Below are positions 1,250-58,943 of a stretch of DNA of 64,000 nt, piece after piece (position 1 is the first letter of the stretch; the number at the start of each line of letters is the position of its first letter). Below the pieces are notes generated by a model. The model was not told the DNA's origin and made no database searches. It saw only the letters and a list, made by a program, of their open reading frames with translations. A program made the translations under genes and the position numbers. The DNA is from Nageia nagi (taxonomy: Eukaryota; Plantae; Pinophyta). The stretch covers positions 59,086,001-59,150,000 of the forward strand of contig JBITNC010000001.1 of assembly GCA_050084985.1 (NCBI GenBank). The letters are read 5' to 3'.

Positions 1250-4200
1250 ACATATGAATGATAGGTTTTATAAATTTACTTGTGATACAACCATTATTTT
1301 TTATGGTGTATACAAGATTTTAGCACCAGAAAGAGAATATACATTTGGTCCCATTATGGGTAAGCCTACACAACCTCCCCTTAGATTATTTGGACATGAA
1401 TGTTATTGCAGGAAGTGAACATGGTCAAATCATAGTGTCAATTGACAAAGTAACATGATTTAAAAAATAAGGATTGTAGAAAGATTTTTTGTGAACATTG
1501 ATATCACCAACGATATCAGCCATGAAAAATTATTGGATGAAGAAAATGGAGATTCATGGGAACAAAATATTATATATGAAAACCTCCAAGTAAGATATAA
1601 TATTTATGGAAAGTATGGAAAGTTTGATCACTATGCCAAGGAGTGTCCTGAAAGCAAAAATAACAAACAAGAAAATCTAACAAAAGAACATGAAGATCAA
1701 AAGGCAATAAGTAGGTGAAATAAAAGCTTCCAAAGGAATGATCTAGACCCTAGGAAAATAAGGGGAGGAATAACTACGAATAATCAAATGTGTTTGCTAT
1801 AAGATATTCATTTCAACCTCTAGATCCAAATGGAGGCATCTAAATTATGGAAATAACTAACGTATAAGTAGAGAAAAAACCTTTCATTATCACTAGTGGT
1901 AGGGAAGGTTCCTAGGAGGATGGATGGGATTTAGCAAGAGGAAGAAAGAAGCAAATATATAGTGTAGATATCAGAAAGAAGATCACCAGGTGAACATAAT
2001 TGTACTCCCCACATAGTATTGATAAAGGATCAATAAATTTAGCAGGTAAAAATAGAAATAAAAATAAACAAAATAAGTACTATGATGATATATTGTTAAG
2101 AACACCCAATGTAGGAAAAAGAAATATCATAAGGGTATCGTGTGAGAGCAAAGATAAAGTATATTACTAATAATACACAACACACCTTAGAGAAGGGTGG
2201 GGTTCGTAAGGCCTCCAATAAGTTCTAGTAATTATGCTCTATTGGAATGTGAGGTGTTGCAATAACCTTGCTTGATGGAGGGAAATCAAGAACCTTTGTA
2301 CATAAGTTAGGCCAAATATAATAATGATTCAAGAGTGGCTACACTATGGAACCTAATCAAGGTGGAAGGTACCCCTCTACTATTATTAACAAATAGAAAT
2401 GTGCCTTTATACTCATTTTCAAGTAATTGAGTTCAATTTTGAATTTGTAGCTACAAATATTTATGCATTAATGATGCTTACGAAAGAAAGATACTACTGA
2501 AAAATATTACCAAATATAGATAAACCTTCAATGATATTCCATCATTGGTTATGGGGGACTTTAATACTATAATGTATAGCTTTGAAAATATAGGAGGAAG
2601 GGAGGAGTCTCAAGGCAATATGGAGGTTCTCAGAAAGTACATGAATGATCAATGTTTTATAGATCTACATATGACTAGAAATTAATTCACATGGTTAAAC
2701 AACCATGAAGATGAGATATTTTCTAGTACAAGTTGGATTAGGATTTGTGCTCCTTGTGTTGAATAAGCGATTACCTAGATTATTCTATGAGCTATAAGTT
2801 AAAAATAGACTTAGCTCATAGCCCAATTTTTGTATCAGTAAAACCATTTACAAAGAATAATTTTCCCTTCATATTTGAGATAATGTGGATTCAGCACTAG
2901 CAGATAGAATATAGGATACAAAAATGGTGGGTGAAAAAATAAGTTTATGGAATCAAAATGTATCAAGTGGCAATTAAGTTATAATTTTGAAAGAAGAAAT
3001 TGAAGGAATGAAATAAATTTATCTTTCATAATATTACAAGGAAAAAGGAGGGGATCAAGGAACAACTAGAATAGATATAAAATGTCTACCAACAAGAAAG
3101 AAGAGGAAGAACAAATCTAGAAGTAGAATAGGAGAAGGAATTAGGAAAGGAATAGAGGAGGACCAGGGAATAGGAAGCTACCCATTAGATGTAAAAATCC
3201 CAAATTGATTGGTTATGTAAAGGTGACCAAAATACTCCCTTCTTCCACATAAAGACCATAAAAGCACCAAGCCTACAACAAAATTATGGCATTGGATATG
3301 GATGATGATTCTATAATTCTATATATAGATATGATAAAAAAGAAAAAGAAATCAAATTCTATGAAAAACTACTTTCCTCTAATCAATTAGGTGAACCTTA
3401 ACTCAGCACAAAAGAGCCTCAACAATATCCTTCCCTTCTAAATGCTGGAGATAGTGATGTTGTTACTAAATCCTTTATGGATGAGGAGATAGAAGAAGTA
3501 TTTTTTAGCATGGGAAAATATAAGGCACCTGGTATAGATATATTCTCTACATTATTTTCAATACTTTTGGTACATAGTGGGAGTGGATGTAAAATAAGCA
3601 ATCATGGAGTTCTAGGTGAATCATGCCTTACTTAAAGTTGGAATGCTACCATTTTAGCACTAATTCCAAAAAGAAATTGAGCCACAAATAGAAGATTTTA
3701 GGTTGATAAGTTTATGCAACATAATATAGAAATTATCACCAAAATACTAGCAAATAGTTGTAGGGACTTATTCCAAAGATAATTTCTAAAGAATAAGATG
3801 GGTTTGTTAAACAAAAGAAAATAGGAGATGGAATAATAATGGTGCATAAATTTATTCACTCAATTCAATATAAGAATGTGGTTAGAATGATAATCAAATT
3901 AGACATTTCAAATACGTATGATGGAGTTTCATGATTGTTTCTTAATAGTATGTTAAAGAAATTTGGATTCTGCTCCAAATTGTGGAAATGGATAAGGATA
4001 TGCATTTCCACTACAACCTTGTCAATGCTAATGAATGGGGAGATATCATGATTCTTCAATTGTTAAAGGGATATCAAGTAGGGGGATCCAATTTCCTCAT
4101 ATCTATTTATAATGATGGTAGAGGATCTTGGGAGGTATTTAAACCATATAAATTTTGATAGGAAACTAAAATAAATACCCTTGGCCTATACTATGAAGCA

Positions 4201-6240
4201 ATCACACATAAGCAATTTGTTGATGATACAATTTTAGTGGATCAATCATCCATCTAGGAAGCAAGGGAGATGAAAATGTTTCTTAAATAATATGAAAGAA
4301 CCTCATATAAGAGAGTCAATTTTGATAAGATCTGGATCTTTTTCTTAAACATTATAGAGGGAAGATAGAGACAAATTGCTAACACTTTCAACTATAACAT
4401 TGATACCTTATCAATAATTTACCTAGGAATATGCTATCTAGTGGAAGAGTGAAAAATAAATTCTAGGAAAATGTAATAGAAAGGATTAATAAAAATTTGG
4501 TTACATGGAAAGAAACCATATTGAGCTAGGAAGAAAAATACTAAAAGTGAAGAAAACATTGTAAAGTATTCCTATGTAGTTTGTAAGTATATTAAAAATA
4601 TCAACCTTGGTGGTAGATAAGATTAATTAGAAGTAGAAACTTCATATGGACTAGAGGAGAGAAATGGAAATAGAAGAACCTAGTGGCATGGGATAAAATA
4701 TGTAGAGTCAAGTACTAAGGGGGATTGGAACTAAGAAGTATGAGATGGGTAAATCAAGTTTTCTAAATCTTAAATCGCACTAAAGCTAACCTTTGACTTG
4801 ATAAAAGATTAGATCAGGGTAATAAGAGAAACATACATGATATTCATAAACAACCTATCACAAATATCAAACCACCCAAAGGTCAATCCTTTTGGAATGG
4901 GCTACTAGATGTCAGAGATCACTTCCAAAAAAATTTAAAGTGGAAAGTAAACAAAGGATATTATGTCATGTTTTAGGAGGATCTATGGTATTGTTAGTGG
5001 CTAACCCATAGCTAAATGGATAAAGTTTAGATTTCAAAATTTGGATCTGGCTCTATAGGAAGTTCTACTTCAAATATGTTCACCCCAATTTTATTTATTT
5101 TTATATTTTTATGAGAAATAGCCCCACATATAAAATAGGTTTTGCTTCTTATATGCCTTAAAATTATAAGTTAAAAAATATCATTAACATAATCACTTGT
5201 TATAGGGAAAACACATACACACACATATATATTTGAAATTAAAATTTGATTATACAAGAAAATAAAATATGTGAATTAAGTATTTGAATGATTATTTACC
5301 TTATATTTATATATTTGGCTCTTCTTTATAAAAAAGTATAACATGATCCAAAATTGATTCACCTCATTTTTGAATAGATTTCAAAATAGATCACCCTTCT
5401 ATTAAAGTATTTTTTGAAGAGGATTCTTGAAATTTTCCCTGATGGCTATCAAAGCCCCTCTAGATCAACAATAATCCTTTGTACATGTACATAATGGGTT
5501 AACATCCATATATGGAGAAGATCAAGAGATCATATGAGTAACAAGGATCAAGAAATTAGATGGATCATCCTCTCAATACCTAATATAGATATAGAGAGAA
5601 CATTGCAAGAAGTTCAAAGGTAGTTAATATAATATAAATTGTATCTGACTACCAAGTTAGATAGTTTGAGTTGTATGAAAGCTACATATAGAAAGTTGAT
5701 GTACTACTCAGTTAAGATTCGATATTAGAAGCTCAATATAAATAAGGTGGATACAAGGAGATTCATACGGATTAGAATCTCACCAATGATAATCTGATAA
5801 GGGAAATGATTTTTTTTAAATAGATGTGTTATGTAGTATGAAGGAAAGGATACTATGAATCACCTACTAATACAATTCCAAATTACTTCTAATATATAGA
5901 GTTCTCTATATCATGAACTAAATAGGTAATGGGTCATACCGTTTAATATTATAGATCTAATTAAAAAATGGGCTTCAGATGGATTGAGTGCAGAGTTGTC
6001 TCAAACATGGAATATGATAATACCCCATATTTCTATGGCCAATATGGAAAGAGTGAAATCACCATATATTCAAAAATTGCAACTATCTGGTAGAAAATAT
6101 CCTAAAAAAATATCAGCATGAATAATTGAAAATATAAATGTAGACATAAGAGTAGACCCTATAGCAGTCAAAGAAAATGTAGAGTTAGGAGAGTGACTCA
6201 ACTTGGAGACCCCACCTTCCTAACTAGAGGATGAGGTGGA
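1250..6240 (+). mobile_element. Decayed L1-type LINE, copy A (ORF1 plus ORF2 EN/RT/zf-RVT)
   Basis: ORF1 remnant PLWVSLHNLPLDY...VNIDIT...QNIIYENL...GKFDHYAKECP (DUF4283/zinc-knuckle-like, ORF 1491-1718). ORF2 starts near 2233 (MLYWNVR) and carries KAPG, WNATILALIPK, ISLCNII, IKLDIS, GDPISSYLF, QFVDDTIL and VAWDKIC motifs, plus a zf-RVT-like LTNDNL...RCVM...TMNHLL near 5780-5875. Many stops and frameshifts. Confidence 0.92.
5023..5441. mobile_element. About 420 bp AT-rich non-autonomous insertion in L1 ORF2
   Basis: Interrupts the LINE. Flanked by atggata (5016-5022) and atggcta (5442-5448). Copy B has perfect atggcta at 56635-56641 and 57060-57066. Confidence 0.6.
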
Positions 6241-6332
6241 GAGGATTTTATAAGTATCATGATGACTAAAAATATCATACAAATAGGGGGAATGAGGGAT
6301 TACATGTCCCTTATTGTATACAATTTAGAGGA

Positions 6333-7361
6333 GATAAACTAGATCATGAACAATAGAGCAACTACGAAGGTAGATGCAAGTGACCCCAACAACAAGATAA
6401 AGATCAAGAAAATTGTATATAAAGTTCAATGATCATAAAATGGATCTTCCTTTACTTAGAATACTATTTTGGTAGTTTATAATGGTAGTATCAAAGTATC
6501 TCTATTATGATTATGGATAATATGTGATAAAAAATTGTATCTTGGATTTGTACTTTTGGCTATTGTTTGGCTACAACTAGAGTAGGTAACTCTAATATAA
6601 AAAATATGTTATGTATGATTTTGATTTAGTTGTGGTACTTGAGAAAACTCTTTTTTACTTGTACCAAAAAAATTTATTGATATAGAAAGAAGTATGCTAC
6701 AAATAAATAAATTAAGCAATATGAATTGGGTTGATTCAGTTATGATAACCACTTATATTTTGGATAGAATCTCCACTAGTAGCTTAGATGGTATACCTCC
6801 ATATGAAGCATGGTATATAAAGAAACCAAATATAAATTATTTAAAAGTATTTTGTTATTTTCCTTATGTAAATATTCCAAAATAACATATGAGAATTCAA
6901 CTTGATCTGAAGGATGAGGCATGCATTTTTATTGGGTATTCTAAAAAAACTAAAATCTATAGGTTTTATAATCTAAAAAATCACAAGATTGAGGTGTTAA
7001 TATATGTAATTTTTGATGAGGGGATAATATATGGTAATAAAAACCTCTACATTAATGATGGTTCTAATTACAAAAGTTCTCTAAAATTGAATCTAATGTA
7101 TTAATCAGCAAATAAAGTTCTTCAAATTTGCAGGCCACTATTCAAGTAAGAAAGAAAATAATTGTTTGAAGTTATCCAAAGATTTTTTCTCCAAGTCCTA
7201 ATTCAATAGCACTTATATTGAGTGAATTTTATTCTCCAAATGATGTTGGTATCAATGCCAAAAAATGTAAAAGAATACTTCAATGCTATCCATTTTCTCA
7301 AATGTTAGATAGTAATTTTTAAAGAAGAGCTACTAGAAGTCAATTACATGATTTCCATTAT
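6333..7361 (+). mobile_element. Copia integrase fragment (copy A only)
   Basis: ORFs 6694-6885 and 6889-7104 read WVDSVMITTYILDR...PPYEAWY.KKPNINYLKVF and ACIFIGYS...YRFYN...VIFDE, typical Copia integrase C-terminal and SH3-like motifs. Confidence 0.88.
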
Positions 7362-7399
7362 ATAACTCAATTTTACCATTATAAAAAGGAAAATATTTA

Positions 7400-8830
7400 T
7401 AAATATTTTGATAATTTCTTAGCTACAACATTTCATAATTTTATTCAAATTCTTGTATATAGATATTCTAAGATGAGAGTTAAAAGAATCATTTCTATTT
7501 GTAGTTGCAAGAAGAATGCCAATTATATCTTTAGATAAGGAGAAAGAGGTAATTAAGACCAGCCTACTCTTATCTTCATATTATGATTTTGAAGATGTAT
7601 TTTTGTAAGGTAAAAGGTTTTCATAGTAGATTAAAGAAATTAAAAAATATTCAAAAGAAAATTACCTTATGCATATATTTGGGATTATATTATTTCACAA
7701 ATAAGATGCATAATATAGTTCTATTACAAGTTTAATATGATAATAATGATTTATTTAGTTGAAGTATTGATAACTCTCTTTCACTAGACCTACATGGTCT
7801 ATAATTTCAATAGGAATTGAATCTAGTTTGAAAAAACTGAATTGTATTTTTTTAAAAATTTGACAACCTATAAACCATATATTTCCACTCTTGGAGTATC
7901 TTATAATTACTATAGTCCTTGAGATGGTATCTTTGTATAGCATATATTTCAAAAATTAGTATACATTTCTATCAAAGCAATTTTTATAATGATATCATAG
8001 GGTACCTAAGATGATGGTTTTAAATTTCCATCATAGAGAATAAATTTTGATATTTTTTTAGGCAAGTTATAATAATTCCTGTATGATGCTTACTTTTTAA
8101 AAGGGAATTTCAAACCATCACAAAAGATCATTTCTATTTTAAAACTAGGAATTAGATTATCTATGTATATAATAGTGAGTGAAGTTAATTTATATTTTAT
8201 TTACATATTTTTACAATATAGTTATAATCTAGATCAATAATTGTTGAGGTATCAACAAGGGTTTAGATGAAAAATATGGAATTGAGTAATATTTTTTTTA
8301 AATATAATTTGATAATTGATAAACCTTTTATAAATTTTTATGTAATAAATATTTGAAATAAGATTCTTGTAGAGAATTTTTTGATAATAATTATAGATTA
8401 TAATCAAATAAGAAAAAAACTATAATAAAATCTTGGAGAGATAAGATATTTTATAATAATCTAGACCATCATGCTAAAAAATAATTAGAATAAAAAATTT
8501 AAAATGTTGATGATGTGAGGGTGGAGAGTTTTGAACTTGGATCCTCCCTTTTTGACTTGAGAGTTTTATCTTGCTACTATTCTCCAAATTCCCTCACATC
8601 CTTAGATGCAGGAAAAATATGTTGATATAGGATACAAACTCCCATATAAATTGTATATTACAAACATGGATAATTTTGATTAGTATTTTATAAGGTGATT
8701 AGTACAAGGGATAAACTTAGTAGAAAATGATTTGAACATCCTAATTTGTATGGTATATAAGCAAAATGAAGAATCAATTAATCACCTACTTATGACATGC
8801 AAAATATTTTGAAAAGTTGGTAGCAGTTTA
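7400..8830 (+). mobile_element. Very decayed AT-rich LINE-like 3' fragment
   Basis: zf-RVT-like CMVYKQNEESINHLLMTC at about 8746-8800. Relatives at 57990-58925, 51060-51290 and 59000-60370. Confidence 0.5.
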
Positions 8831-9539
8831 TCAATTTATAATATAGATAAGATTATATTGAGAATGATAAAATACCTCAAAAGAAAATTCAATGTATTGA
8901 ACAATTTCAATGATAATTATAAATTAAAATATACTTCAATTATATAAAACTATAAAATATAATTGAATTATGAATGAAAGTATGAAAATATTTTTGGGAA
9001 GGTGGGTGGGGAGATTGACAATTCATATGAATTTCACACTTTTGATGCTTGAGTTCATCATGGAAATCATCGAAGAAATTGGCCTACAAATCACTATAGC
9101 AAATCCAATACACCTCACACATATTTTGGTTGTGTGAACATTGATCCATATGATCTATTAAGGAAAATTGAAGATTTTTTGGAAAGATCATAGCCAAGGC
9201 ATGGATCGTGAATACAATCAATCATTGATAACACTTAGGATTAGATGGAAAACATGTCAAGTGTAGGGTGTCAATACCTTAGACATAAATTAGAAATGAT
9301 CATTTTTATACTTTTCTTTTAGTAATGCCCTATCTTAGATCAATTACAACTATCCTAGGCTAGAAAAGACTAGAACATACCAATGGGAGGTTTTAAAGAA
9401 AGAATTATTATGTGGGAGATCCTTGTAATGGGGGTATTTAGGAATTCATCCATTCACTCCATGGGCATGAAAAAAATTGGTCTCAATAAGTTACAAAGTC
9501 CTAGGATGAAGCAAGGGTTATCATAGATAGGTAAACTTC

Positions 9540-10560
9540 ATAATTAACACAAATCTAATTACAACCACTAGGGGTATGGTGAAGAGGGGATTCACACTCC
9601 AAACATGTTTACACTTTACAAGATGATATCATGAATTTCTTAGATAAGGGTGAGTCAATGCCAACTTAAATAATGTCAAGTTATAAGGTAAATTCTTTAG
9701 TTTACCCATGAAATATTGTTGCAATGGCACTATGCAAGTTATTTACTTTAAAGGACACCACTCAAAGATTGGAGGCTACCATTTTGTGCTAATGGCCAAT
9801 TTTAGGGAGAAGCTCCAAGTAAATCTCCCTTACTTTTTGTATCACTCCATGGAATCATACATTCATAAAAATAGGGGCCAATTCCCACTCACCATCGGTT
9901 TATTAAGATTTTGGTTGAATTTTCCTATAGCAGAACTGAAATTGTAGCACCACTTCAATAGAGACCTCAACTGTCCCATGCTAGCCACTATCACCTTGAC
10001 CCCCATGACCTCTATGCCCTCCATAAGAACAACCCACTCCTCTTCCACCTCCCTCACATCCCCCACATGATCCTCTTCTATCACTTCCTTGAGATAAAGC
10101 TCTTCCCTTGGATTGAGTTCCTTTATCCTCTTCACACCTCTACTCTCTGTCTCCCCCTAAAACCCAAGGTACGATCACCATTTCTTTTAATTATAAGGAT
10201 TCAATTAGAGATGTTAAGAGGTTTTGGCTTCAGTGGTTGAGGCATAAAGTGACAAATAACTCCATGGAAGGAGTCATTTGAAGAATGCAATGCTGTTATA
10301 TCCTAAGGATCAAACTAAAGAAGCAAAGATGGAAGGACACAAGAGAAAATTTAGTTATTCTCTTCTCACACAAAATAACTAAATTTTGTAAGGAGGGAAT
10401 GAAAGTGTAAGCTACAAAGAGTGAAAACATCATCAAGAGGCTTTTGGAGGACACCTAGTTGAATAGAAGGACTTATCAGTAAGAGAATATCATTAAATCT
10501 TTGTGGGACTTCATGGACAAGATGAAGAATGCTAAAATCAGCAAAAGGTAGGGCATGGAG
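9540..10560 (+). mobile_element. Remnant of an LTR-retrotransposon accessory ORF
   Basis: ORF 9708-9947 (YFKGHHSKIGGYHFVLMANFREKLQVNLPYFLYHSM) resembles the YHF.L..HF....NLPY(F/Y)L..S motif of plant retroelement accessory proteins (recognised from memory), followed by Pro/Ser-rich and coiled-coil-like decayed sequence. Confidence 0.5.
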
Positions 10561-10824
10561 ATGACACTTTTCCTTATGTTATTGATATCTACTCTTTTTG
10601 ATTAGGATATATGGATGGAAAATCCTTCCAAAGAGGGAAGTGATATGTAAAATACCATAGATAGTCATTTTGTTCAATGATATATCATAACAATTTTGTA
10701 AGAAAACTTTTTGAGCCTAGTTAATATTAATTTACCTTCCATAAAACAAAAGCATGTTAATTATTTGTAAGATAATGAAAAGTAGTATAAATTTTTAAAT
10801 TTTTAAATATTATATATATATAAT

Positions 10825-11305
10825 CCAAAAATTACAAAATCTTTTAAACATTTTTACAAATCATTCATATGAATAACTTCTTTTTATATCTCAAATCAAA
10901 ATACTTAAACAAAATATATTTATATTTTAACAACCAAAAATTATAATTGAATCATTATAAAAGCATAAATAATATGATGATAATTTTTAATAAACATATT
11001 ACTAATTCTAAAAATCTTTTAAATTTTAATCAAAAATAAAAATCATTTTAAAATTTAATTCAAAATTAAAAAAATCTTTTAAACTATTTTACTCAACCTC
11101 GATATGAATCACTTGTTTTCTCTCTCAAATAAAAATACTTAACATACATTTAAATTGTATTAGCTATAAATAATGACCAAATCACCTATATAATGATAAA
11201 TTTTAGTAAGAAAATGAAATAACCTTCTAACTTTTATTTTTAATTAAAAAAAAAGGGTCTTTCATATGATAACTTCGTTTATCTCTTTTCAATCAAGATA
11301 CTTAG
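10825..11305. repeat. Two to three degenerate AT-rich direct repeats
   Basis: Motif catatga(a)taactt...tcaaatcaa(a/g)atactta recurs near 10866, 11101 and 11263. Confidence 0.6.
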
Positions 11306-12697
11306 GAAACAAAGAGAAGTACAACATAGAAACCAATTAATAATAATAAGTAGTAGTTCTTACACCGCAACATACAACATAATAACAGTTTGCTAGTACT
11401 TGTTTAGCAGAAAAATATTAGCATTCGTTGCTGATGATCTGAAAGCAGCAGCTTCTACAACTTTGGATATCCGTAACTTCAATTCCTTGGGAGTCCATGG
11501 TATGATTGAGAAAGTCCATTATATCCTGTCCTTTAGGAGAAGTTTTTCTATGGGAAGCATGATCTATGGAAACGAATCAATGAACTCATCCATAAATCAT
11601 CTACGAAGAAGATTTTCTTGGACATCAGACTACAAAAGTATTTTTGAGGCATTGGACAAGTAAGCGTTTTTCTTTTCTTGATCTGAAATATGCATGTTGA
11701 TGTCTTTTGTCAAAATTGGAATTTTAGATATTGTGTTTTGAATCACCTGTTCCCTACATGTTGTGTATTTGTTGGGTGATAGTAAGGCTAAATTTACTGA
11801 AATTTAAGTTATAGAAGACATGACAATAAGCATTGGTGTTATCTTTCATATTTTGAATTTTAAATTATGGTAGATTGATTGATAGTCTCTCCAATGTGAT
11901 CATTTTACAAGGAAGTGTGAAACTTATTCAACTGTTTATATGTCAACATATTTCAGTTTCTGTGTGTTTATTTGAAAATGTAAAGGAAGGCTTACATGTT
12001 AGAGGAAGTGATCTAGGTGAATTGATTGTTTCTGAAAGCATTGTACTATGCCAGAAAGACCATCTTAAAGCTATAAACATACTTCACAAAGATCTCAAGT
12101 GTTCCCCTCTATAGATCAAGAGTTTTACAAAGAAACTATACAACTACTTACTTTGGAAACCATCCATTAATTCTAAAAATAAGTGGTTGTGTTATACTCT
12201 TTAAAACTTTTGATCTGGAGAGAAGAGTTAATTAGTGAATATTCTCAAAAGTAGTTGTGTGATTCCCTCGTAAAACTATTGGTCTAGGGAGGAAAACGCT
12301 TTGAGATGCTTATGAAGTAGTTTTATAGCTGGTCTTTCCTGCATAATACAAACTTTTAGAAGCAATCAATTTTCCTATATCACTTCCTCTAAATTATAAA
12401 CCTTTCTCTAAATCTTCAAAGAGACATGTAAAAACTAAATTATGTACTATATAGTTTTTGAGCAAAAATCAACCAATCTAACATAATTCATTGTTCAAAT
12501 ACGAAGAATAAATCCAATGCTTGTGACCTTATCTTGTATAACATAAACTTTCACTAAAAATTAGCCTTAGTGCCAACCAATAAATACACAATATCCCAAC
12601 ATGTAGGGAACAGGTGATTCAGAGCAAACAATCTAAAATGCCAATTGACAAAAGAGATCAACGTCAATATTTAAGATCGAAAATGAAAACTACTTAC

Positions 12698-13121
12698 TTG
12701 TCAAAGTGCCTCAAAATTCTTTTGAAATGTGATATAGTACACTCGCCTCCACGTGTCATGATATCAATAAAACTAGAATATAGGTATTCTTCAAAAACAT
12801 ATCTCCCACATTCCAGTTGCAAGCAGTCTTTTTTCAAACGTAATAAGTGCAGTAATATCACGAACCCAAATCCCTACAATAGAAATGAAACCAAGAGAGA
12901 TCAAGGCCATTGGATTCGGACGAGACACTAATCGGTGGACAATGTCGGTGAAAGTCTCCTTCTTTAGAAACTTATGAATGGCATACACAAATTAATTGTT
13001 TAATAGATGAGACGCATCCATTGCCACCTCACTCAAAACTCCAGAGACGGGGAGGCTCAAATGTCCTTGGCTTTTTTCCAATTCCAATCTTTCTTCCCTT
13101 CATAATCCAAGATAAGCGAAA
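12698..13121 (-). other. Predicted non-coding exon looped out of the hairpin
   Basis: Minus strand: ggttttttgtatttttcAG acceptor at 13122 and gacaa|GTAAGT donor at 12697. All three frames contain stops. Confidence 0.45.
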
Positions 13122-13139
13122 CTGAAAAATACAAAAAAC

Positions 13140-13560
13140 CAATATAAATTAAATTGTTTTAAATACAGATCTGAGAGTGAAGCAGAAGTCTAGCATGTTA
13201 AATATAAACATAAAATTTAAAATAACAAGCAAAAACATTGTTCTTTTCCAAGCCTCCTCATTTGATAAAATACTATAAGTAAGGGTGATCCTTGAAAATA
13301 AGAACAATTATATAAATTAAATTGTTCTAAATACAGATCTGAGAATCAAGCATAAGTCTAGCATGTTAAAAATGAACAGAAAATTTAAAATAGCAGCAAA
13401 AACTTTGATTACTTCCAAGCCTCCTTATTTGATAACAAATTATAAGCAAGCTAGGAGAATTCTAGCATACTAAAATTTCACAGAAAATTTAAAAAACACA
13501 GCAAAAACTTTGATCTCTTCCAAGCCTCCTCATAAAAACTATAAGCAAGAGTGATCCTTC
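13140..13560. repeat. Tandem repeat, about 170 bp unit, about 2.5 copies
   Basis: tataaattaaattgtt(t/c)taaatacagatctgaga at 13143 and 13311. ttccaagcctcct at about 13246, 13413 and 13518. Confidence 0.9.
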
Positions 13561-13939
13561 AGCGGTTGGCAAAGTATAAAATCTTGACATATAAAACGGA
13601 TCTAATAGATGATTTATGCAATAGTTGATTGCTTCGTTTCCATAAATCATACTAATCGTAGAAAAACTTCTCCTAAAAGACATGAAATAATGTGGTCTTT
13701 CTGAATCGGGCCATGGGATTGCAACAAGATATTGAAACCTACTTACTTTTGCAAATCTTGCGAATAAGCAGTACGAAATGCACTGGTGCTTCATGAATTG
13801 ACATATACTATAAAAATTAAAATTCCCCAAAGCTGTGAGAGAGGGATCAACAACAATACCAGACTGTCCACATATAGCACACACCCACACACTTTTGAGC
13901 AAAGCGAAAGTTTAGTGGCTTGGATGGCTGGATACCCTT

Positions 13940-14495
13940 TCTGTATATAAATTCAGCTAACACAATGGAAAACTCTTGGATATTCTAACTACCCAAACCT
14001 AAGACGTTGATAATACTACTTATAGATGATCTTATACATGAGTGATTCCTAATGTGTAATGTGATCACTACACCAGCGCATTCCTTCCTGTGAGTGTTGT
14101 CCCTAGACTTCACTTTTGGCTGCTTCCCGTGAGTGTCGCCGTAGACTTCACTTGTTCAGCTTGGCATCCACCACGGACATGATGGACAAAACCCTAATCC
14201 GATGTCTCCTACATTTCCTTGGTGAACTCTTCACGCGCATCACCGTTCGATTTTCTTGAGATGCTCCCCAATTCGAGCCAGGGCACTTTAATGGCTGAAA
14301 TGATCCGTGTAGGATACAGCTAAGATTACGTGGAGAAATGTTGCTTCCTTACCTTATAAAACTTCCATGTTTGCTTCTCATGGCCTGTATCTTTTCCGAG
14401 TATATCTACATGAATAACGTACTTATAGCTTATCTTATACATGAGTGATTCCTAATGTATAATGTGATTCCTAAACCAGAGCATCCCTTCCTTTT
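13940..14495 (-). promoter_or_regulatory. CpG-rich putative promoter with a duplicated 70 bp module
   Basis: Highest CpG density in the window. Direct repeat 14017-14089 / 14420-14493, each giving CTATAAGTA (TATA-like) on the minus strand. Telo-box AAACCCTAA at about 14189-14197, CGCG box at about 14234, ACGTGG at about 14328, and a 39 bp tandem repeat at 14084-14153. Confidence 0.5.
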
Positions 14496-16332
14496 ACACA
14501 TTTGTGTTGCTAATCTCATCAAACTCTAATTATCTTTAAAGCCCCATGGACTAAATTGCACCCAATATTTTTATTTGGGTATTGTACAAATTGGCCTCTA
14601 ACATGTATTCTTCAATTTTATCTAGACTAAATTTTAGATTTATTTTGACTATCTTGGGATCTATCATTAGCAACATGTACATATGTATAACATACTAAAA
14701 TATTTGTCTTTGAAAATATTGGCTCCTTTTATGTGATGATGGTATGATGTTAAACTTCTTAAACATGGGTTTCATTGAATTTTTTTTTTTATATAAATAG
14801 AATACTTATAACCAGAAAATTATGTAGAATTTGTGATACATAGAATTAAATATTATTTATAATTAATGTTAGTTAAAAATTTGTTAATTTCAAATTTATT
14901 TTATTGTAGTACTGAATATTTTTATTTTTAAGTATTTTTTTATTAAAGTAGAAAAGAGGATTTTAAAAGGTTCCCTTTAGCATTTATAGATTTTCAATTA
15001 AGCTTTTGAGAAAAACATTGATCATACAAGGGTATAAAAAAATATTTAAACCCTTCCAAAGAAAATTGAACAACTATTCCTCTAATGGAATTAAACACTT
15101 CAAACAACACATAAATATCTAAAAAACTTATAAACATAGGAGTCTCATCCTATGCTTGAGCTCCTTCACATGGAGTTTTAGTTCTTAGTATAAATTACAA
15201 CCATGTGATTTATATGATAAAGAAAAGCCAACATCTCCTTCATATTCTCCATCATATCTCAAGTAGTAGATGAGATTCAAGTTAAGGTCATTTAATGTAT
15301 CTGTGATCCTTCACCTTTGAATTTCTTTTTGCGATATAGAATGGGATTCATATTTTTCATGAATCCATAAAGCTATCAAAATGGATATGTAACCTCAATG
15401 ACTAATGCTTTGGTAGGACTTTGATCTTAAGGGAAAGAGAATTCTTCTTTCAACTACATTCTCATTTCATGATTTCTCCTTTCTTCTTGATGTTGGCAAA
15501 CTTAGGAGATACCAACTACATAGCCTAGACCTCTTCTTATGTTTCCTCTTCTTGGACTTGTTGTGGCTCCTCTTCTCTCCCTTATGTAGCTTCTCCAATC
15601 TCTAAAGCCTTAGCAGAATCCAATTCTATATTATAGCTAAGAGAACATTAGAAAAGGTAAGCCAGATAATATGCCAACTCCACCAACTTAGTTTAAAGGA
15701 GCTAGAACTTGCATAGGATGAATCATTTATTACAAGGTTATGTGTACTACATTCTAATCATATAAAATAAAAAAATTATGATAAAATGATTTTGAAATCA
15801 TGGATTATATCCTAAAAATTAAGTAAAAAAACTATGATATTTCAAATTTTTGATAACTATGTTATAAAAAAATGGCTATTTAATATCATTTCTTAAAGAT
15901 TTTGGTGCTCAACTTGTATATCAAGATGGTCATTTTTATGATATTGCATGCTTGTTTTTGAAGTTGTAGAATGCTCAAGTTGTGGTTATAGAGTTCCTTT
16001 TATTTAATTATAAATATTTTTCATCAATGTATTTTTTATTTTCTTTAGACTCACCTCCATGGGGAGGTAGAGGGCTTAGCCCATACTATTATAATTAAGG
16101 AGGGAGGTACTTGAAGGTGGCTAAGGATAATTTTTGAACCCCCTGGATCAGGTTCAAGGACAACATCCTTGAAGAAAAAAATACATTTATTTTTGTATAT
16201 CAATATTCTATATATAATTCAAGTTTTTTACTATGTAATAGAAATATTGGTTGTCATTAACTTAAATTCATAAGATGCTCACTTTCTATTTTGTAAGCTC
16301 ATATTGGATGCACATCCTATTCCTATAAGATG

Positions 16333-22559: not shown

Positions 22560-23010
22560 ATGTCTAGATGATCATATAAATAAAGGTAGGGATGATCATA
22601 CCTAAAGTCAAAATGATCATCTGCAATTAAGCACTAAGCTATCATCTACATAAAAGCTTAGATGATCATCAGCATAGAAGTTCAGATGATCATCTGTATA
22701 GAATCTCAGATGATCATCAGTGCTTCTTCATAGATTGATTATCAAGGCTTTTATGGATATGATCATCTATAATCATGCAAAGATGGTTGTATGCATTAAT
22801 TAGAAGATTATCATCTATAACAAAGCACTGATGATCATCTGCATAAAAGCATTGATGATCATCTGGATTAAAGTCTTAATGATCACATGTAAAGAAAAAT
22901 AGATGATCATTTATATTTTTATGTAGATGATCATTAGTTCATTTATATGATTGATCATCTATTCATATGCATTGTTGATCATTTGTGCATTTGCGTGATT
23001 GATCATCTAC
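22560..23010. repeat. Array of palindromic GATGATCATC motifs, about 22 bp spacing
   Basis: About 20 degenerate copies, e.g. agatgatcatc near 22660, 22685 and 22708. Confidence 0.9.
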
Positions 23011-29295: not shown

Positions 29296-29800
29296 TAAAG
29301 GAACTAACACTAAGAAGATAATTCCTAAGCAATCAAGATCTCTTGAAAGCTTAAAATACACATATAACAAACTCACAAATAATACAATTTTAGAAAGTAA
29401 CTCACGATTTAAAGTGGTTCCTCCAACTAGGATTCCATCCACTAACTAAATCTTTACTTCAATCACAAATACAACTCTCTTACAATCTTCTTAGTCTTAA
29501 ATTCTACACTTCTATCTTATAGCATAACTTTATCTACAAATCGGTATTTTATTACAAAGTGGAAGCCTTCTATTTATAGGCCAAAATCTCTCTTTGGATC
29601 ACCTTTTTATCCAATGTACAAAAGCATGACATGCACATCCTTTTACCTAAGGGGCATGCTCAATACATGGAGTGTAGGACAAGTTACATTATCATATTCA
29701 CTTAAATACTTAGGGGATCAAATGATACCTTTAAGTTTTAGTGAACTTACATAGAAGATTTAATACAAACCTTTACAAGAATGCATTATACATTCCAACA
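29296..29800 (-). repeat. Copia 3' LTR
   Basis: Ends cattatacattccaaca like 37110. Matches 36704-37110 from 29396 onward. Confidence 0.9.
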
Positions 29801-30619
29801 CTCCTCCTTAATGCAATATTGGGATAGAGCAAGTAAGAGAGAAGAAGAAGAGAAAGTAAGAGAGTCATCCTCCAAATAGATACAATGGATATGAGAACTT
29901 TTGATATATTTGTAAAGTAAGAAAGATCTAATTTGAGACTTACTACTTTGCCAAATAAATCATTAACCACAACCAATTTCAATGTGAAGTAATCATCCAA
30001 TTGGAAGTCATGAAGAGTGTCTAAGAGCCTGCATACCTAAGGTAAGTAACTTACAATCTCAAAGGAACCTACAAGTCATAAGTAGCTCAAATAACAAGAT
30101 CAATTAGATGCAACATATTTATCTCATCAAGGATAGATGAAATCACACAAATGCCATCATGAATTGATCAATGTACTATAAGTCATCATGAAGATGCCAT
30201 GTCAAAAAAACTTATAGTCACCTACTATATATAAAACATATATTGATTATCATTACAAAATAGATCATACATATACAAGTTCTTCATATATGGATAACAA
30301 AATAGTGCCAAAAGACACATAAAAGTTCCTCACATATGGATAACTAAACAATGCTAGATTGACCAAAAAAAGAGTATGCACATACGAGTTCCTCTCATAT
30401 GGATAATTGAATAGTGCCAAAAGACATATAAGAGTTCCTCACATAATTTGTATAATAAGTTTCTCATGCAAAGCAAACTTACCATGAAAGTGTACAACAA
30501 AATCAACACTATACAGCACAAAATCCTTTTAAGGATGAAGTTGTCACCACAAATATGAATTCAACATAAGAATTCAAACTTCACCCCCCTTTAGGGCAAC
30601 TTCACCAACCTAATAGCAA

Positions 30620-33600
30620 TTCTAAGCTTACAAAATTGAGCTTTCAAGAGGAGCTTAGTGAAAAATCAATGAAGTTCAAGGTGGATGGACAATACTCTAG
30701 ATGTATGATACCATCAAGAACCTTCTTCCTAATAAAATGGGCATGGATTTTCATATGTTTTATTCTTTTATGGAACATAGGATTCTTAGAAAAAAAATAT
30801 TTTGATTGATTATCTAAAGAAATCAAATATGAGCCACTTTTATTCATACCTAATTTCTTTTAGAAGATGTCTTAGCCAAATGGCTTCTTAGGCTACAATA
30901 GATATGGCATAATATTCAACTTCTATGGTGGAAAGAGAAATAGTAGGTTGATTCTTGGAAGCCCAAGAGATAGCTTTTAAACCAATGCTAAATACATACA
31001 TAGAGGTTGACTTCCTATCATCTCTATCTCCCCCATAGTTAGAATCTAAGAATCGAAAGAGAACAAATGAGGGTAAATTAGAATACTTGAAAGCAAGATC
31101 GTTAGTCCTTCCAACATAACTCAAGATTTGCTTAACAAAATTGAGGTGCTTAACATAAGGTTTTTGCATGAATTGTGCCATCAGATTCATTGCAAAGGTA
31201 ATATCTATCCTAAATATAATCAAATACAAAAGACTACCAATTAATTATCTATAAGTTGTAGCATTAGCTAACTGAAAGTTGGAGTTTAGAGAAATAATGA
31301 TTCTAGGAGAGACTAGTATTATAGCATATCTACACTTCTCCATTTCAAACTTCTATAAGATGTTTGATATACTTATATTGACTAAGTATAATCCTTGTAT
31401 TGATACACTTGCATTTCAAGATAGTAGTGCAAGAGACCAAGATCAATCATTTCTAATATTACCTTAAGTTTGGATATGCAATCTTGAATAATTTCATCAT
31501 TATTCCTAGTATTCAAAAGATCATCCATATAAAGGAGAATCAATACCACATCTTTTCTTTGATTGAGCACATATAGATTTGAGTTATAAAAACACTTAGA
31601 GAACCAATATCTGCAAAGTACCTTGAAATCTTTCTATATCAGGCTCAAGGTACTAACTTAAGTCCATACATTGACTTTTTTAGCTTGCATACAAAGGACT
31701 CTTTTCCCTTCATAATAAACCCTTTTGGTTGATTCATGAAGATTTCCAAATCCAATTCACTATTGAAAAAGCCACTCTTAACATCAAGTTGAAAAACTTT
31801 TCATCCTTGAGCTATAGAAAGAGCAAAGATAACTCTCATAGTAGGCATCTTTGCCATAAGAGCAGAGGTTTTCTCATAATCTACATCATATTTTTGAGCA
31901 AAACCTTTAGCTACAACCCTTGCCTTATATTTTTCAATATCTTTTACTAAATTTAATTTTACCTTATATATCCACTTATTAACAAACACATTCTTTTCAT
32001 TGGGATAAGGAACCAAGTCCCAAGTTTTATTTTTCATAAGCACCTCATACTCCACTTTCATGGCTTCCATACAACACTCATGCTTAGAAGATTCTTTGAA
32101 GGTTGAGGGCTCATGCTTGTTATTAATCTTAGAAATTAAGGATTTGTTCAAGGTCATGCTCCTTATTACCCTTTGAGTTGGAGAGTTTTATTTCTAAGAT
32201 GACTTGTCTACATTAATATCTAACTAGCCAGGTGTAACTAAAGAGTCCTTTAGATCACCAATATCCTCATTAGAATTAGATTCATCAAGAAGTTTATTAA
32301 ACTTTACATCTCTTGAAATGAATATTGCTTTATATGTTGGAGAGTAGAGCCTATAGCCTCTATGCTAGCTATTATAACCCATAAAGATATATTTTTTAAC
32401 TCTTTTTTTCCAACTTCTTCCCTTTCTCAAAAACAATGTAAGAGAATGCTTCACAACCAAACATCCTAAGGTGAGAAATGTTAGGTTTTCTTCTTGACCA
32501 TGCCTTAAAAATAATTTTACTCTAAATGGATTTTATGGGACACCTATTCAAGGTGTAAATAGTAGTACTCATAGCTTCACCCCATAAGAATTTAAGAAGA
32601 TTACCCAACATACATCTAACCATCTCCATAATTGTTCTATTTTTCTTTTCGACAACACCGTTCTACTGAGAAGTGTATGGAATTATAAACTACCTCTAGA
32701 TTTTATACTTGGTATAATAGTTATTGAACTCATTACTATTATATTATTCTCCATTATCTGATCTCAACATCTTCAATTTAAGGTTAGTTTGATTCTCAAC
32801 AAAGGCTTTAAAAACCTTAAAACTTTTAAATGTTTAATACTTATGCTCAAGTAGATACCAAAGGTCATCCTATTAAATTCATTAATGAAGGTTAAGACAT
32901 AAGATGCTCCTCCAAGTGATTTAGTTTGAAATAGACCTATCAAATCTGAATGCACAAGTTGAAGAGATTGAGATGCTCTTGTTGTATTATTATTTTCAAA
33001 CTTTTGTCTATGCATATTACCAAAAAATCACTTCTTACATAGACCAACTAAAGAGAAATTGAAGGCAAATCTTCCATAAGTTCTTTGTCTTTCATGAATT
33101 GAATACTCTTATGGTTAAAGTGCCTTAAATGAGGATGCCAAACATTGCATTTAGAACACACATTAGAAGCAAGACACATCTTTGATGAAACTTGATTCAC
33201 AATATAGAGGTTATCTTTCACAAATTCTTTAACCAAAGTGGTGAATCCTTTTGTAATGAATTGGGATTAAGAGTCAAACTCAAAAGAGTATCTTTTTCTA
33301 GCAACTAGGATCATGGAGAGAAATTTCATCCTTAACTTAGGAACATAGAGAACTTTACAAAAACCTTTTCATGAATCAACATACTTCCAATTCCTTGGAC
33401 TTCAATGGTAGAGTTATCACCTATCACAACTACATCTTTTTTATACTTGTGAAAGTTCTCAAATTTTTCCTTTTCAAAGCATAGGTGATTAGTGCAACTA
33501 GAGTCAACAATCCATTTTGATGAAAAAGATTAAGACATGGAGTAGAGTGTCATAACAAAACTAGCATAAATATTCTCTCTCCTTTGTACTTATTTACATT

Positions 33601-34520
33601 TACCATTGCCTTTATTCTTTTCCTCTCTTTTCTTTTTGTAGTAATCAATTTCTTTATGATCTTGAATGCCATAATAATTACAATTACCATCAAACTTTTC
33701 CTTAGGATAAGGAGTGTTTGCTTTGTCTTTTCTTTCTCTTTTCTTGAAATGATTATTGTTGCCATTCTTTTTACTACTTGGTTGTTATTTCTATTATTCT
33801 TGCTATTTTTGTAGCCATTGCCTCTCTTTCCAAACCTTTTGGAGGAAGAATGATAAAATTTCTTTTGATAGTTGAAATTCTTCTTGAAAAGAGTTTTCAT
33901 TGCTCCAAGAGCAATGTTATTATCCTTAGGAGAAGAAATAAAAACTTTATTGTTAAGAGTTTTCTCATGCTTCAAAAGGTGTTTTGAAAGTTTCTCAAGG
34001 GAGAAGACTTATTCATCATCAAGTCTTATTTCATAACCATTACAAAGTTTCCAAACTTTGAAGAAAGGATTTGAAGAAAGATGAAGACCATAAGCTCATC
34101 ATTAATCCAATTGCCCCACAACAATAAGTTGGGTCCTTAGGTCAATGATTTTGTTTAAGTAGATAGCCACATTTTCATCTTCCCTTGATGAGATTGAAGC
34201 AACTTTTGAAGAATGGTAAATCTTCTTGAAAGGTTTGAATCAAGGTAGATTTGTTTAAGCTTATCCCACATTTCCTTTACTAAGGTTGAAAAAAAATTAT
34301 TAGCAGCACATCATCTAAAACTACATGGTAAATCATGGAGGTTCCAACTCATTCTTTGTGTTGTAAGCCTTTAGTGCCTTCTCATCTATAGGAGGTATAA
34401 GGTTCTCATTCATTATTTGCCAAAGCTTCCTTGTCTGCAATTCAACTCTCATCCAAGGTTCCCAAATCCCATAGTTGGAATCATCAAGAATGTGTTTGGG
34501 TAAAAAGGATTATTTCATTT
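30620..34520 (-). pseudogene. Copia gag-pol remnant
   Basis: Gag NYGIWEPWM...LW (about 34420-34480), protease WIVDSSCTNH (about 33490-33515), GAG-pre-integrase VWH.HL.H, integrase LQLVHSDLIG, RT KTWDLV...KYKARVVAKGFAQ and LYMDDLL, RNase H DSNYGGDRDDRKSTS...ISWASK and FHKRIKH. Confidence 0.93.
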
Positions 34521-36703: not shown

Positions 36704-37110
36704 GAGTAACTCAAGATGTAATGTGGTTCTTCAAACTAGGAGTACATCCACTAACTATATCTTTACTTCAATCACAAATACAACTCTCCTACAATCCTCC
36801 TAATCTCAACTCCTACACTTCTATCCATAACATAACTTTACTCCACAAATTGGTTTTTTATTATAAAGAGAGAGCCTTCTATTTATAGGCCAACATCCTA
36901 CTTTGGACCACCCTTTTATCCAATGTATAAAAGCATAACATGCACATTCTTTTATCCAAGGGCCATGCTCATGACATTGAGTGTTGGACAAGTTACATTA
37001 TCATATTCACTTAAATATTTAAGGTATCAAATGATACCCTTAAGTATTAGTGAACTTACGTAGAAGATTTATATACAAATCTTTACAATAATACATTATA
37101 CATTCCAACA
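36704..37110 (-). repeat. Copia 5' LTR (inner end truncated, no PBS seen)
   Basis: Matches 29396-29800 at roughly 88-90%. No similarity left of 36704. Confidence 0.88.
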
Positions 37111-37115
37111 CTTGC

Positions 37116-42039: not shown

Positions 42040-43284
42040 TAGATTTAGTAATTATGGAAATAAAATTACTCAAAATCAAATGCCAAAAAGAATTAAAGAG
42101 AAATAAACCATAATTTGAAGACACTGGTATTTACCCTAGTTCACCCAATGTTGGATAGTATGCCTTGGCTCTCTCTTATTATGGTTTGGATTTATGCAAC
42201 TATGCACTATTGCACATATAATAATCTACAATATCCCTCTTTTGTAGTCTCCTATCTCAACACTTGAAATATCTGCACTCTTCTCCACACTTTCTTCCTT
42301 TCTAGAACAAGCAAACTTAGATTATAATGTAAAATAACATTATATATAAAAAACTCTTAACTCCACCAAATGTCATATAGTATCCTTTTATAATATTTTA
42401 AGGAGCTCTGAGACAATTAAATGGTTGTAACAATACTTAGAAAAAGCAAGATTTGATTTTGGCTAGAAATCCCATCTCAACTTCCCTTTTTCATCATCCA
42501 AAAAATTATATGAAAATCACTAAAATAGCCTCAGAAAATATATGAGAATATTATAGAGGTTGGGAATAATACCTACAAGTTTTCCCAACAATAAAATACC
42601 AAAAAATACCTTTTCTCAACAATGCATAGGTAGATGCAACCGAAATAAAATATGTGGTAGTCAACGAGTCCACATTCATAAAAATACTCCATACACCATT
42701 TTAAAAAAACTTTCAATAAAATACCCATAAAATAATTCCATCTCTAAGTTTGACATGTAGCGACACCTTGGATGAGTATTTTTGAATCAAATTTGGTGGA
42801 AAATAGTACATACTACCATGGGTCCTTTCTTGGAATTTGTGCACTTTATTTAGGTCATATTTTCCTCTAAGAAACCAACACCTACTTCCATGAAATTAGC
42901 ACCTTTTTTGGAGTGGAAAATTCAGCCTTAGTACATATGTACTTTCATTGGTGATTATGCACATGTTTAGTGGGTTTTTGACTTGCCCACTTCCATGTTG
43001 AGGTGATATTTTTTATATTTATTTTTGTATATATTTTTTCTTTTCTCTTTTGTAATTTTAGAAAAAATAAATACATATTTATATTTTTTTCTACAGGTAT
43101 TTTAAATATGAATTTTTTTCTTCATTTTGTATTTTAAATAAAAATACTATAAAACTTAAAAATCACATATCTTACACACCATGAGTAGGATTTTGATTCC
43201 ATAAGAAGTCATGGAATCATGGAGGAGAAAAGAAATAAATGAGATACCCATGATTTCAATTCAAAACAATCCAATTTTAGATCA
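42040..43284 (-). mobile_element. Probable 3' LTR of an internally deleted Gypsy element
   Basis: Ends tagatCA followed by ctccttccc (PPT complement). 42621-43284 matches 49957-50626 at about 85%. Left boundary is uncertain. Confidence 0.55.
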
Positions 43285-49953: not shown

Positions 49954-50626
49954 AATAATGCATAGGCAGATGCAACCAAAATTAAACACATGGAAATCAT
50001 GAAGTCCTCATTCATAAAAATACTCCATCCACCAATTTAAAAATACCTTAAATAAAATACCCAAAAAAATAATTCCATCTCTAATTTTGGCATGTGGTGG
50101 CACCTTGGATGAGTAGTTTTAAGTCAAATATGGTGGAAGATAGTACTTAGTACCATGGGTCATTTCTTGTAATTTATGCACTTTACTTAGCTTATATTTT
50201 CCTCCAAGAAACCAATGCCTACTTTCATGAGATTAGCACCTTTTTGAAGTGTAAAATTCAGCCTTAGTACATGTGTACTTTCCTTGGTGAATGTGGACAT
50301 GTTTAGTGGAATTTTGATTGGCCCACTTCCATATTGAGGTGACATGTTTTTTTATTTTTATGTTTTGTATATTTATTTTTATTCTCCATTTTGGTATTTG
50401 ATAAAAAATAAATATAGATTTGTATGTTTTTCTATTGGTATTTTAAATACAAAATTTTTTTCTTCATTTTGTATTTTAAATAAAAATACTATAAAAGTTA
50501 AAAATCACATGTCTTTCACACTAGGAGTCGAATTTTGATTCTATATGATGTTCTAGAATCAAGGAGGAGAGAATAATTAAACGAGATACCCATGATTTTA
50601 ATTCAAAACAATCCAATTGTAGATTA
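49954..50626 (-). repeat. Partial second LTR of the Gypsy element, split by the L1
   Basis: Direct repeat of 42621-43284, beginning at the L1 TSD. Confidence 0.7.
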
Positions 50627-53975: not shown

Positions 53976-54012
53976 ATGTATATTATAGAACTACAAGAGT
54001 TTAAAGCTACAA

Positions 54013-57000: not shown

Positions 57001-57860
57001 AAATACATCACCCTCCTATTAAAAATATATTTTTAAGTGGAGTCTTAAAATTTTCCCTGATGGCTATCACAAGCCCCTCTAGATCAATAATAATCCTTTG
57101 TAGCAAGTACATAATTGGTTAACATCCATATATGGAGAAGATCATGAGATCATATGAGTAACAAGGATCAAGAAATTAGATGGATCATCCTCTTGATACC
57201 TAATATAGATATAGAGAGAACACTACAAGAAGTTCAAAGGTAGTTGATATAATATAAATTGTATCCAACTACCAAGTTAGATAGTTTGAGTTGTATGAAA
57301 GCTAATATAGAAATTTGATGTACTACTCAGTTAAGATTCAATACTAAAAGCTAAATATAAATAAGGTGGATACAAGGAGATTCATTAGGATAAGAATCTC
57401 ACCAATGATAATCTAATAAGAAGGGAAATGATTTTTTCTAAATAGATGTGTTATGTACTATGAAGGAAAGGAAACTATGAATCACCAACTAATACATTTC
57501 CAAATTACTTCTAATATATAGAGTTCTCTATATCATGAACTAAATAGGTAATGGATCATACCATCAAATATTATATATCTAATTAAAAATGGGCTTCAGA
57601 TGGATTGAGTGCAAAGGTGTCTCAAACATGGAATATCATAATACCCCATATCTTATGGGCAATATGGAAAGAGTGAAATCACCATATATTCAAAAACTAC
57701 AACTATATAGTAGAAAATATTATTAAAAAATAATAGGATCAATAATTGAAAATATAAATGTAGACATGAGAGTAGACCCTGCATCAATCTAAGAAATCGT
57801 AGAGTTGGGAGAGTGCCTCAACATGGAGACCTCACCTTCCTACCAAGAGGATGAGGTGGA
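54013..57860 (+). mobile_element. L1 LINE copy B, lacking ORF1 and the start of ORF2
   Basis: Shares the same stops and the same 420 bp insertion (56642-57059) as copy A, so it arose by DNA duplication rather than retrotransposition. Confidence 0.92.
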
Positions 57861-57950
57861 GAGGATTTGATAAGTATCACGATGACTAAAATAACATACA
57901 AATAGGGGACTGAGGGTTTACATGTCCCTAATCATATACAATCTAGAGGA

Positions 57951-58943
57951 AAATACTAATTGAATGAGTGCTTGCAAGAAAGTTTCAAGTGATTAAACAA
58001 TAAAAATATTCAAAGAAAATTTACTTTTGAAATTATATATATTTTCAAAATGAGATACTATATTTTATTTATATTAATATTTATGATATTTATAAGTAGT
58101 ATAATACTCTTTATAATATGGATTATATTGCAATAAAAATTGAATCTTTGAATAATAACCATTTGTATTTTGTACAAAAATTGAAGTCATAAACTATATA
58201 AAATATTACTGTATGATGTCTTAGTTTGTTAGTTATTAAAAATTTATGACTTTACAAACAAATTTTATTATAATAAATATCTAGGAATCTAAATAATTGA
58301 AGTTTAAATTTCTTGAATATTATGATAACCATTTTATGGATTTTATTATAGATCCCTTATATGCTACTTTAAAGGTAATAACCCCATCATAAAGCATGTT
58401 CTAATTTAAACCAAATTAATACTATTATATATATAAGTATTATTTTATTTTTTACATTATTTAAATATTTTCATAATTAACATATGAGGTTCACAAGTTG
58501 ATCTAAAGATGGGGGCATAATTTTTTAATGGTATTTAATATAAACTTTTTAAATCTATTAATAATTTTGAAAAATCATAAAAATTGAGCAATATTAAGGG
58601 GTTATAAAATAGAAAAAAATTTATATGAAGGGAAAATAAGATATTAAAAAATCTGACATATCTAAATTAATTACATAAAGTTTAAAATGAAGTGAGGAAT
58701 TAACTTGATTATTTATGACAATTTTATCTTGCTAATTTTCCAACCCCTATCATTAGAATAAAAAATTTGGTTATCATAGGATACAACTCGCTATCAAATT
58801 GTATATTACAAACATGGATAATTTTATTATATTATAGTGTTGTATCAAGGATAAAGTTATAGAATACTTATTGCTATCCATTATTTCAAATGTATAGATA
58901 AGAAAAATAAGAATCAATAAATCAATTATCAAAATTTAAATTG
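57951..58943 (+). mobile_element. Diverged member of the AT-rich LINE-like family (copy B only)
   Basis: taggatacaactcgctatcaaattgtatattacaaacatggataatttt (about 58777) matches 8628 and 60185. ttttatcttgcta and aagaatcaataaatca are also shared. Confidence 0.6.

Follow-up and report, generated by a model that had tools for sequence, protein, structure and literature searches.

A long inverted repeat within a CpG-retaining island of Nageia nagi, perhaps an ancient duplication decaying without constraint

It is well established that young plant MIRNA and hpRNA loci can arise by inverted duplication, a precedent that counts for reading the locus described here as a hairpin gene. Hairpin-siRNA loci that produce 24-nt RNAs usually carry methylation. 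Long inverted repeats (LIRs) have been catalogued in LIRBase, which holds 6.6 million of them in 424 genomes and defines them by arms of 400 nt or more in which matches reach 80% and indels do not exceed 10% (PMC8728187). The same source states that a long inverted repeat is not necessarily transcribed into a hairpin RNA, and only 159-280 siRNA-producing repeats were found in rice libraries (PMC8728187). Unmethylated regions (UMRs), a different class of locus, have been described for large plant genomes as a mark of genes and of cis-regulatory space (bioRxiv 10.1101/2020.05.21.109744). In this study, we have explored a long imperfect inverted repeat that has traits of both.

The window, by which we mean the whole stretch of 64,000 nucleotides that was analysed, has a GC content of 29.6%, a CpG observed/expected ratio (o/e) of 0.12 and a CWG (CAG/CTG) o/e of about 0.3; in a plant, such low CpG and CWG values are to be read as the footprint of long-term CG and CHG methylation. 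This composition agrees with that published for the Welwitschia genome (29.07% GC; PMC8275611). Within it lies an island of about 3.4 kb where CpG o/e is 0.4-0.75 (0.07 in the background) and CWG o/e is about 1 (0.23-0.32 in the background), and positions 11100-14418 hold 48 of the 163 CpGs of the window. The first-pass annotation had described this as the only CpG-retaining island; the island is real, but it is not the only one, as its duplicate at about 62.6-64.0 kb also keeps CpG. The features to which we refer are the following.

11000..14450 (approximate bounds): whole CpG/CHG-retaining island, about 3.4 kb
11495..11603: outer left arm, inside an 87-aa ORF without homolog; 81% identity to 13716-13606
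11624..12149: inner left arm, pairs with 12733-12254; 1 CpG (o/e 0.08), CWG o/e 1.06
12150..12253: loop and centre of the inverted duplication, about 100 nt; identity in the arm alignment about 46% here
12254..12733: inner right arm; 5 CpGs, each a TG or CA in the left arm
12734..13605: bulge, present in the right arm only, 872 nt
12734-13140: CpG-rich piece of the bulge, CpG o/e 0.75
13142-13560: three degenerate repeat copies in the bulge
13606..13716: outer right arm, inside the 137-aa ORF 13489-13902 (minus strand); CpG o/e 0.77
13741..14418: CpG-dense core, GC 41%, 19 CpG, CWG o/e 0.93
14189-14197: AAACCCTAA in the CpG-dense core, one copy
14017-14089 and 14420-14492: direct repeats bracketing the core, 73 nt, 89% identity
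62852..64000: paralogous copy of 11300-12451, 96.45% identity, covering the left arm and loop plus the first 200 nt of the right arm

On its left the island begins near 10900-11100, at the point where the two paralogous copies become less diverged. This edge is formed by degenerate, AT-rich repeats (10830-11304, 19% GC) with a spacing of about 235 bp, which are 98% identical between the copies. On the right, segment 13741-14500 has a CpG o/e of 0.61, and CpG density reaches its maximum for the window in the 330 bp between the 73-nt direct repeats. A partial tandem duplication or the insertion of a small element could explain this arrangement. The telobox in the core is no more than expected by chance, one having been found and 1.14 expected in the window.

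The two inner arms, of 526 and 480 nt, were recovered by blastn as an opposite-strand self-match (68% over 1191 columns, E 1.8e-114), which a repeat search of the window split into blocks of 72-84% identity. In a global MAFFT alignment, 379 of 523 sites are identical (72.5%), with 64 gap columns in addition and with indels of 8, 7 and 32 nt, while the mean identity across ungapped blocks is about 80%. The inner stem of about 500 bp with its loop of about 100 nt, as described at first reading, is therefore present. So is the distal stem (81% identity, E 8e-24), slightly shorter than the 11478-11603 / 13606-13736 that had been claimed, and together the two stems give a foldback spanning 1110 nt (inner) to 2259 nt. 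The one-sided bulge, previously put at about 880 nt, has 872 nt and does hold three degenerate repeats, which received no score from Tandem Repeats Finder; the "exon" of the first reading has neither a homolog nor a codon pattern. The splice-like signal common to both arms was found again, as GACAAGTAAG at 11655 (+) and 12693 (-). We also agree that the structure is a tail-to-tail inverted duplication, with a unit of about 730 bp; the description of this unit as "intron-containing" was drawn from nothing more than an ORF adjoining GTAAG. Two further candidates were rejected: a fourth GACAAGTAAG at 21505 lacks extended homology (local alignment score 23, below the shuffle maximum of 29), and a 21-nt direct repeat at 12679/13728 is at chance level (about 1.6 expected, by a rough estimate). 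Elsewhere, a palindromic inverted repeat of about 290 bp (22641-22931, 69%) lies in methylated background, and, with this second imperfect example, such repeats are not rare in the window.

Using a number of protein searches, we found no sign that the locus encodes a protein. Pfam gave no match for the 87-aa left-arm ORF, the 137-aa right-arm ORF, the bulge ORFs or the other ORFs of the island; phmmer found no homolog of the 87-aa ORF among 1.84 billion representatives, and a word-indexed protein search returned no relative of the 137-aa ORF at 13489-13902 (-). The outer arms differ evenly by codon position (6/6/7) and by a 2-nt, frameshifting indel, and the left-arm ORF carries 1-nt indels between the paralogous copies. 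These observations bear out the earlier statement that the locus has no conserved ORF. By the same token, as there are no homologs, no codon pattern and several indels, "exon" and "intron" are labels without support: a protein-coding exon would be expected to show homologs or a codon-position pattern of substitution, and neither is apparent here.

The history of the locus can be read from a segmental duplication in direct orientation (2398-12451 / 54011-64000, at least 10 kb, spacing 51.6 kb), which reaches the end of the window, so that the second copy is visible only up to 64000. This second copy has its own inverted self-match at 63496-63994, which places the inverted repeat before the segmental duplication. 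The arms are separated by a K2P distance of about 0.35, and the same sequence differs by about 0.026 from one paralogous copy to the other; the inverted duplication is thus roughly 13 times older than the segmental one. Inside 10901-12451, 9 of 14 CpG sites are common to both copies, against 0 of the 27 sites that either copy has in the flanks (2400-10900 vs 54011-62450). The latter count implies a complete CpG turnover at about 7% divergence in the methylated part of the genome, and the contrast argues that the island stayed unmethylated in the germline. We infer this state from CpG survival and not from a measurement of methylation; the evidence, although indirect, points to a UMR-type lack of CG and CHG methylation that is stable over time. 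The divergence between the copies also falls from 7.4% in the flanks to 2.6% from about 10900, every substitution class being about 3-4 times lower inside the island than in the flanks. As even the A<->T transversions are reduced (1.02% in the flanks and 0.26% in the island, p 0.002), deamination alone is insufficient as an explanation, and the slow divergence could stem from constraint, from a locally reduced mutation rate or from gene conversion between the copies. With respect to gene conversion, the frequency of indels is not lower in the island (10/1531 vs 59/6966), but these are 1-nt events and may be assembly noise.

The two inner arms have not lost their CpGs in the same manner. Each of the five CpGs of the right arm has TG or CA as its counterpart on the left, and CWG is not depleted in the left arm. 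Such one-sided CpG loss with intact CWG is unlike symmetric siRNA-directed hairpin methylation, which would be expected to erode both arms in all contexts; the pattern looks more like CG-only methylation of one side.

Several other features of the window were recorded. The flanks of the segmental duplication are 89-95% identical between the copies, and an internal stretch (6226-7360 vs 57846-58942) aligns at only 62-73%, as if replaced or evolving much faster. In a GC-richer segment to the left of the island (9450-10530 vs 61012-62091), copy 2 has 9 CpGs that copy 1 lacks and copy 1 has 4 that copy 2 lacks, which points to unequal decay of the copies. Direct repeats of 409 bp at 29396-29802 / 36705-37112 (87%, 7.3 kb apart) enclose decayed copia-type ORFs at 30888-33975 (-) with RVT_2 (E 8e-15) and a weak rve, and together these are probably an old LTR retrotransposon; a second such pair of direct repeats lies at 42618-43282 / 49954-50624 (85%).

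Folding of both strands placed the locus far below shuffled controls on plus and on minus. The inner hairpin reaches -433.2 (+) and -431.1 (-) kcal/mol, while its dinucleotide shuffles lie at about -220 kcal/mol (z -32 and -35), and the whole locus reaches -702.6 (+) and -764.6 (-) kcal/mol (z -18 and -34 vs shuffles). The longest surviving helices have 28 consecutive pairs on the plus strand and 23 on the minus strand. For the whole locus the minus strand has an advantage of 62 kcal/mol; the strands of the shuffles differ by 28 and those of the bulge alone by 69, and the lower minus-strand energy is explained by base composition, mostly in the bulge. A weak preference for a minus-strand transcript had been drawn from a hand count of G:U-compatible transitions (about 15 on minus, about 9 on plus). 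We could not reproduce this count: the MAFFT arm alignment gives 35 G:U-compatible mismatches on minus and 33 on plus (binomial p 0.90), and the preference is not real. The inner fold is equal on both strands as well.

The arm-to-arm mismatches comprise 68 transitions and 76 transversions in 523 sites (ts/tv 0.9). When the paralogous copies are compared, no part of the island has diverged more than the inner left stem (19/525, 3.6%, vs 20/996 in the rest), whereas 0 of 103 sites differ in the loop, and the longest plus-strand helix (11734-11761) has accumulated 2 substitutions. Of the stem, 196 columns can be compared in both copies, and 12 of these differ, with 1 compensatory change, 3 pair gains, 5 pair losses and 3 neutral changes. 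The compensatory one is a double change from G:C to A:T at 12017/12374, for which we roughly estimate a chance of about 0.05. All the sequence tests for constraint on pairing (fold, wobble, ts/tv, paralog comparison and pair changes) were negative, and the inner arms appear to drift apart with no detectable constraint on pairing. Even if most of a 500-bp stem is free of selection, one short miRNA-like duplex within it could nevertheless be selected.

These data bear directly on the possibility that the locus is a working hairpin-RNA or proto-miRNA gene, which we consider doubtful. The gene would produce a candidate spanning transcript, probably of the minus strand, from the CpG-dense core; the transcript would fold back and be diced to 21-22-nt small RNAs acting in trans on the parent gene family. 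Such a gene would fit the very stable fold, the position in an unmethylated, slowly evolving island adjoining a CpG-dense, promoter-like core, the retention of the repeat in both paralogous copies, and the single compensatory pair with helices of up to 23-28 bp. It sits less well with the mismatches, among which ts/tv is below 1 and neither wobble pairs nor one of the strands are favoured, and with a stem that is less conserved than the rest of the island, its best plus-strand helix included. Changes that break a pair also outnumber those that keep one, and the global alignment, at 72.5% matches and 11% gaps, falls short of the LIRBase thresholds for identity and indels, while the ungapped blocks reach about 80%. 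No parent gene or target was found. A word search of sequencing runs returned no RNA run containing the locus, and Rfam 15, searched over 10830-15500 with E up to 1, gave no family but only two chance-level matches to unrelated ones; a tRNA scan was empty, and metagenome pattern scans with a 21-nt block identical in both arms and with the bulge repeat each gave 0 matches. A narrower form of the idea, in which a proto-miRNA or hpRNA locus would have escaped RNA-directed DNA methylation in a plant genome that ranks among the most methylation-eroded known, with two unmethylated, slowly evolving copies and selection on only a short part of the stem, seems to us quite improbable. If expressed and diced, the locus would be a small-RNA gene midway between inverted duplication and miRNA in a giant, methylation-eroded genome.

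The arms could also be the ends of an element rather than duplicated host sequence, that is, a remnant of a repeat family, either of the foldback/MULE type with long terminal inverted repeats or a transposon-captured fragment; we regard this as unlikely. In its favour, four small DNA-type sequencing runs (153-312 million letters, from four studies with four organism labels) contain 7-23% of the sampled words of 11300-14400, while other species in the same four studies contain none of them. As these runs are thin and the genome is large, with a single chromosome piece of more than 150 Mb, this would hint that part of 11300-14400 is multi-copy or enriched. Degenerate tandem repeats, which lie both in the bulge and left of the locus, would agree with such an origin. 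Against this, a scan of all boundary pairs within about ±30 nt found no target site duplication (TSD), a scan of low power given ends that are 20% diverged; the only flanking matches that resemble one are due to the palindromic CCATGG inside the arms. No terminal signature of a transposable element (TE) was found at the repeat boundaries, no ORF has a transposase or other TE domain, and the 64 kb hold no further copy of the repeat apart from the segmental duplicate. These negative results support the earlier judgement that the locus is not recognisably TE-derived. The CpG and CWG contents are stable, which sets the locus apart from all recognisable TE remnants of the window. The locus could also derive from a recent transfer of organelle DNA, non-coding and of mitochondrial type; this would account for the normal CpG content, the lack of homologs and the presence in thin DNA runs. 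The locus is partly present in low-coverage runs and, like organelle spacers, it matches no protein, tRNA or Rfam entry. Yet usual plant mitochondrial values exceed the GC of 28-41% and the CpG o/e of 0.4-0.75 seen here, and the words are absent from the other species of those studies, which is not what slowly evolving organelle DNA would give. The insertion would also need to be older than the segmental duplication and yet have retained 9 of 14 CpGs, and arms that are 27% diverged do not make a young insertion, all of which leaves this origin very improbable.

Based on our results, the reading that we prefer, and to which we give an even chance, is an ancient inverted duplication that decays, free of constraint, within an unmethylated island that is itself non-coding. 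In this reading, about 730 bp of non-coding (or long-dead) sequence would have been duplicated tail to tail at the left side of a 3.4-kb island free of germline CG and CHG methylation, in an AT-rich and heavily methylated genome. The island may represent a cis-regulatory unmethylated region, or it may be the stretch next to the promoter of a transcription unit that is non-coding or lineage-specific. Its likeliest functional part would be the CpG-dense core at 13.7-14.4 kb, as the promoter or regulatory region of an unrecognised transcription unit, and the inverted repeat, some 13 times older than the segmental duplication, would be a passenger. Leftward transcription from the core, if any, could yield a leaky, imperfect hairpin RNA as a by-product, and nothing in the sequence says that a hairpin RNA has been selected. 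The base rate in LIRBase counts for the passenger reading, such repeats being common and few of them giving small RNAs. Against it stand the retention of the repeat in both paralogous copies, the compensatory pair at 12017/12374 with the helices of 23-28 pairs, and the rate at which the whole visible island evolves together with its hairpin, about one third of that of the flanks in every substitution class, which could reflect function. As it stands, the locus is one of many long inverted repeats and an ordinary candidate hairpin locus. The comparison of the two copies nevertheless reveals a sharp and stable unmethylated island from sequence alone, and CpG sharing between paralogs can serve as a cheap flag for regulatory or genic DNA in methylation-eroded genomes.

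Compared with described systems, the locus shares features with several. Like foldback/MULE elements, it has inverted arms of several hundred bp; it differs from them in that no TSD, terminal motif or transposase is found and the arms do not consist of subterminal repeats. With young MIRNA genes that arose by inverted duplication of a target (MIR161/MIR163 type), it shares the tail-to-tail origin, an intermediate decay of the arms and a few near-perfect helices. The distinctions are that no parent or target gene is identifiable here, and that plant MIRNA genes have short foldbacks of less than about 300 nt, each yielding a single precise miRNA/miRNA* duplex, while this one exceeds 1 kb (1110-2259 nt), lacks a defined miRNA/miRNA* pair and matches no miRNA family described in Rfam 15. 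The hairpin-siRNA LIRs of LIRBase, Arabidopsis IR71/IR2039 and the rice germin-like-protein LIR are closer in form, with two arms of more than 400 nt and a short loop, and the arms of 526 and 480 nt found here exceed the LIRBase minimum. As in those LIRs, ORF- and splice-like sequence is overlapped, and a long hairpin would be possible if the locus were transcribed. Its arms are more decayed (72.5% matches and 64 gap columns of 587 by MAFFT, or about 80% in ungapped blocks), and, unlike the usually methylated loci that make 24-nt RNAs, the locus keeps its CpGs. This last trait brings it near to UMRs. Methylation is here deduced from sequence decay, and no annotated or recognisable gene is attached, in contrast to UMRs; what the island has in common with them is that it forms a discrete, kilobase-scale block without CG/CHG decay amid methylated repeats, stable in two copies.
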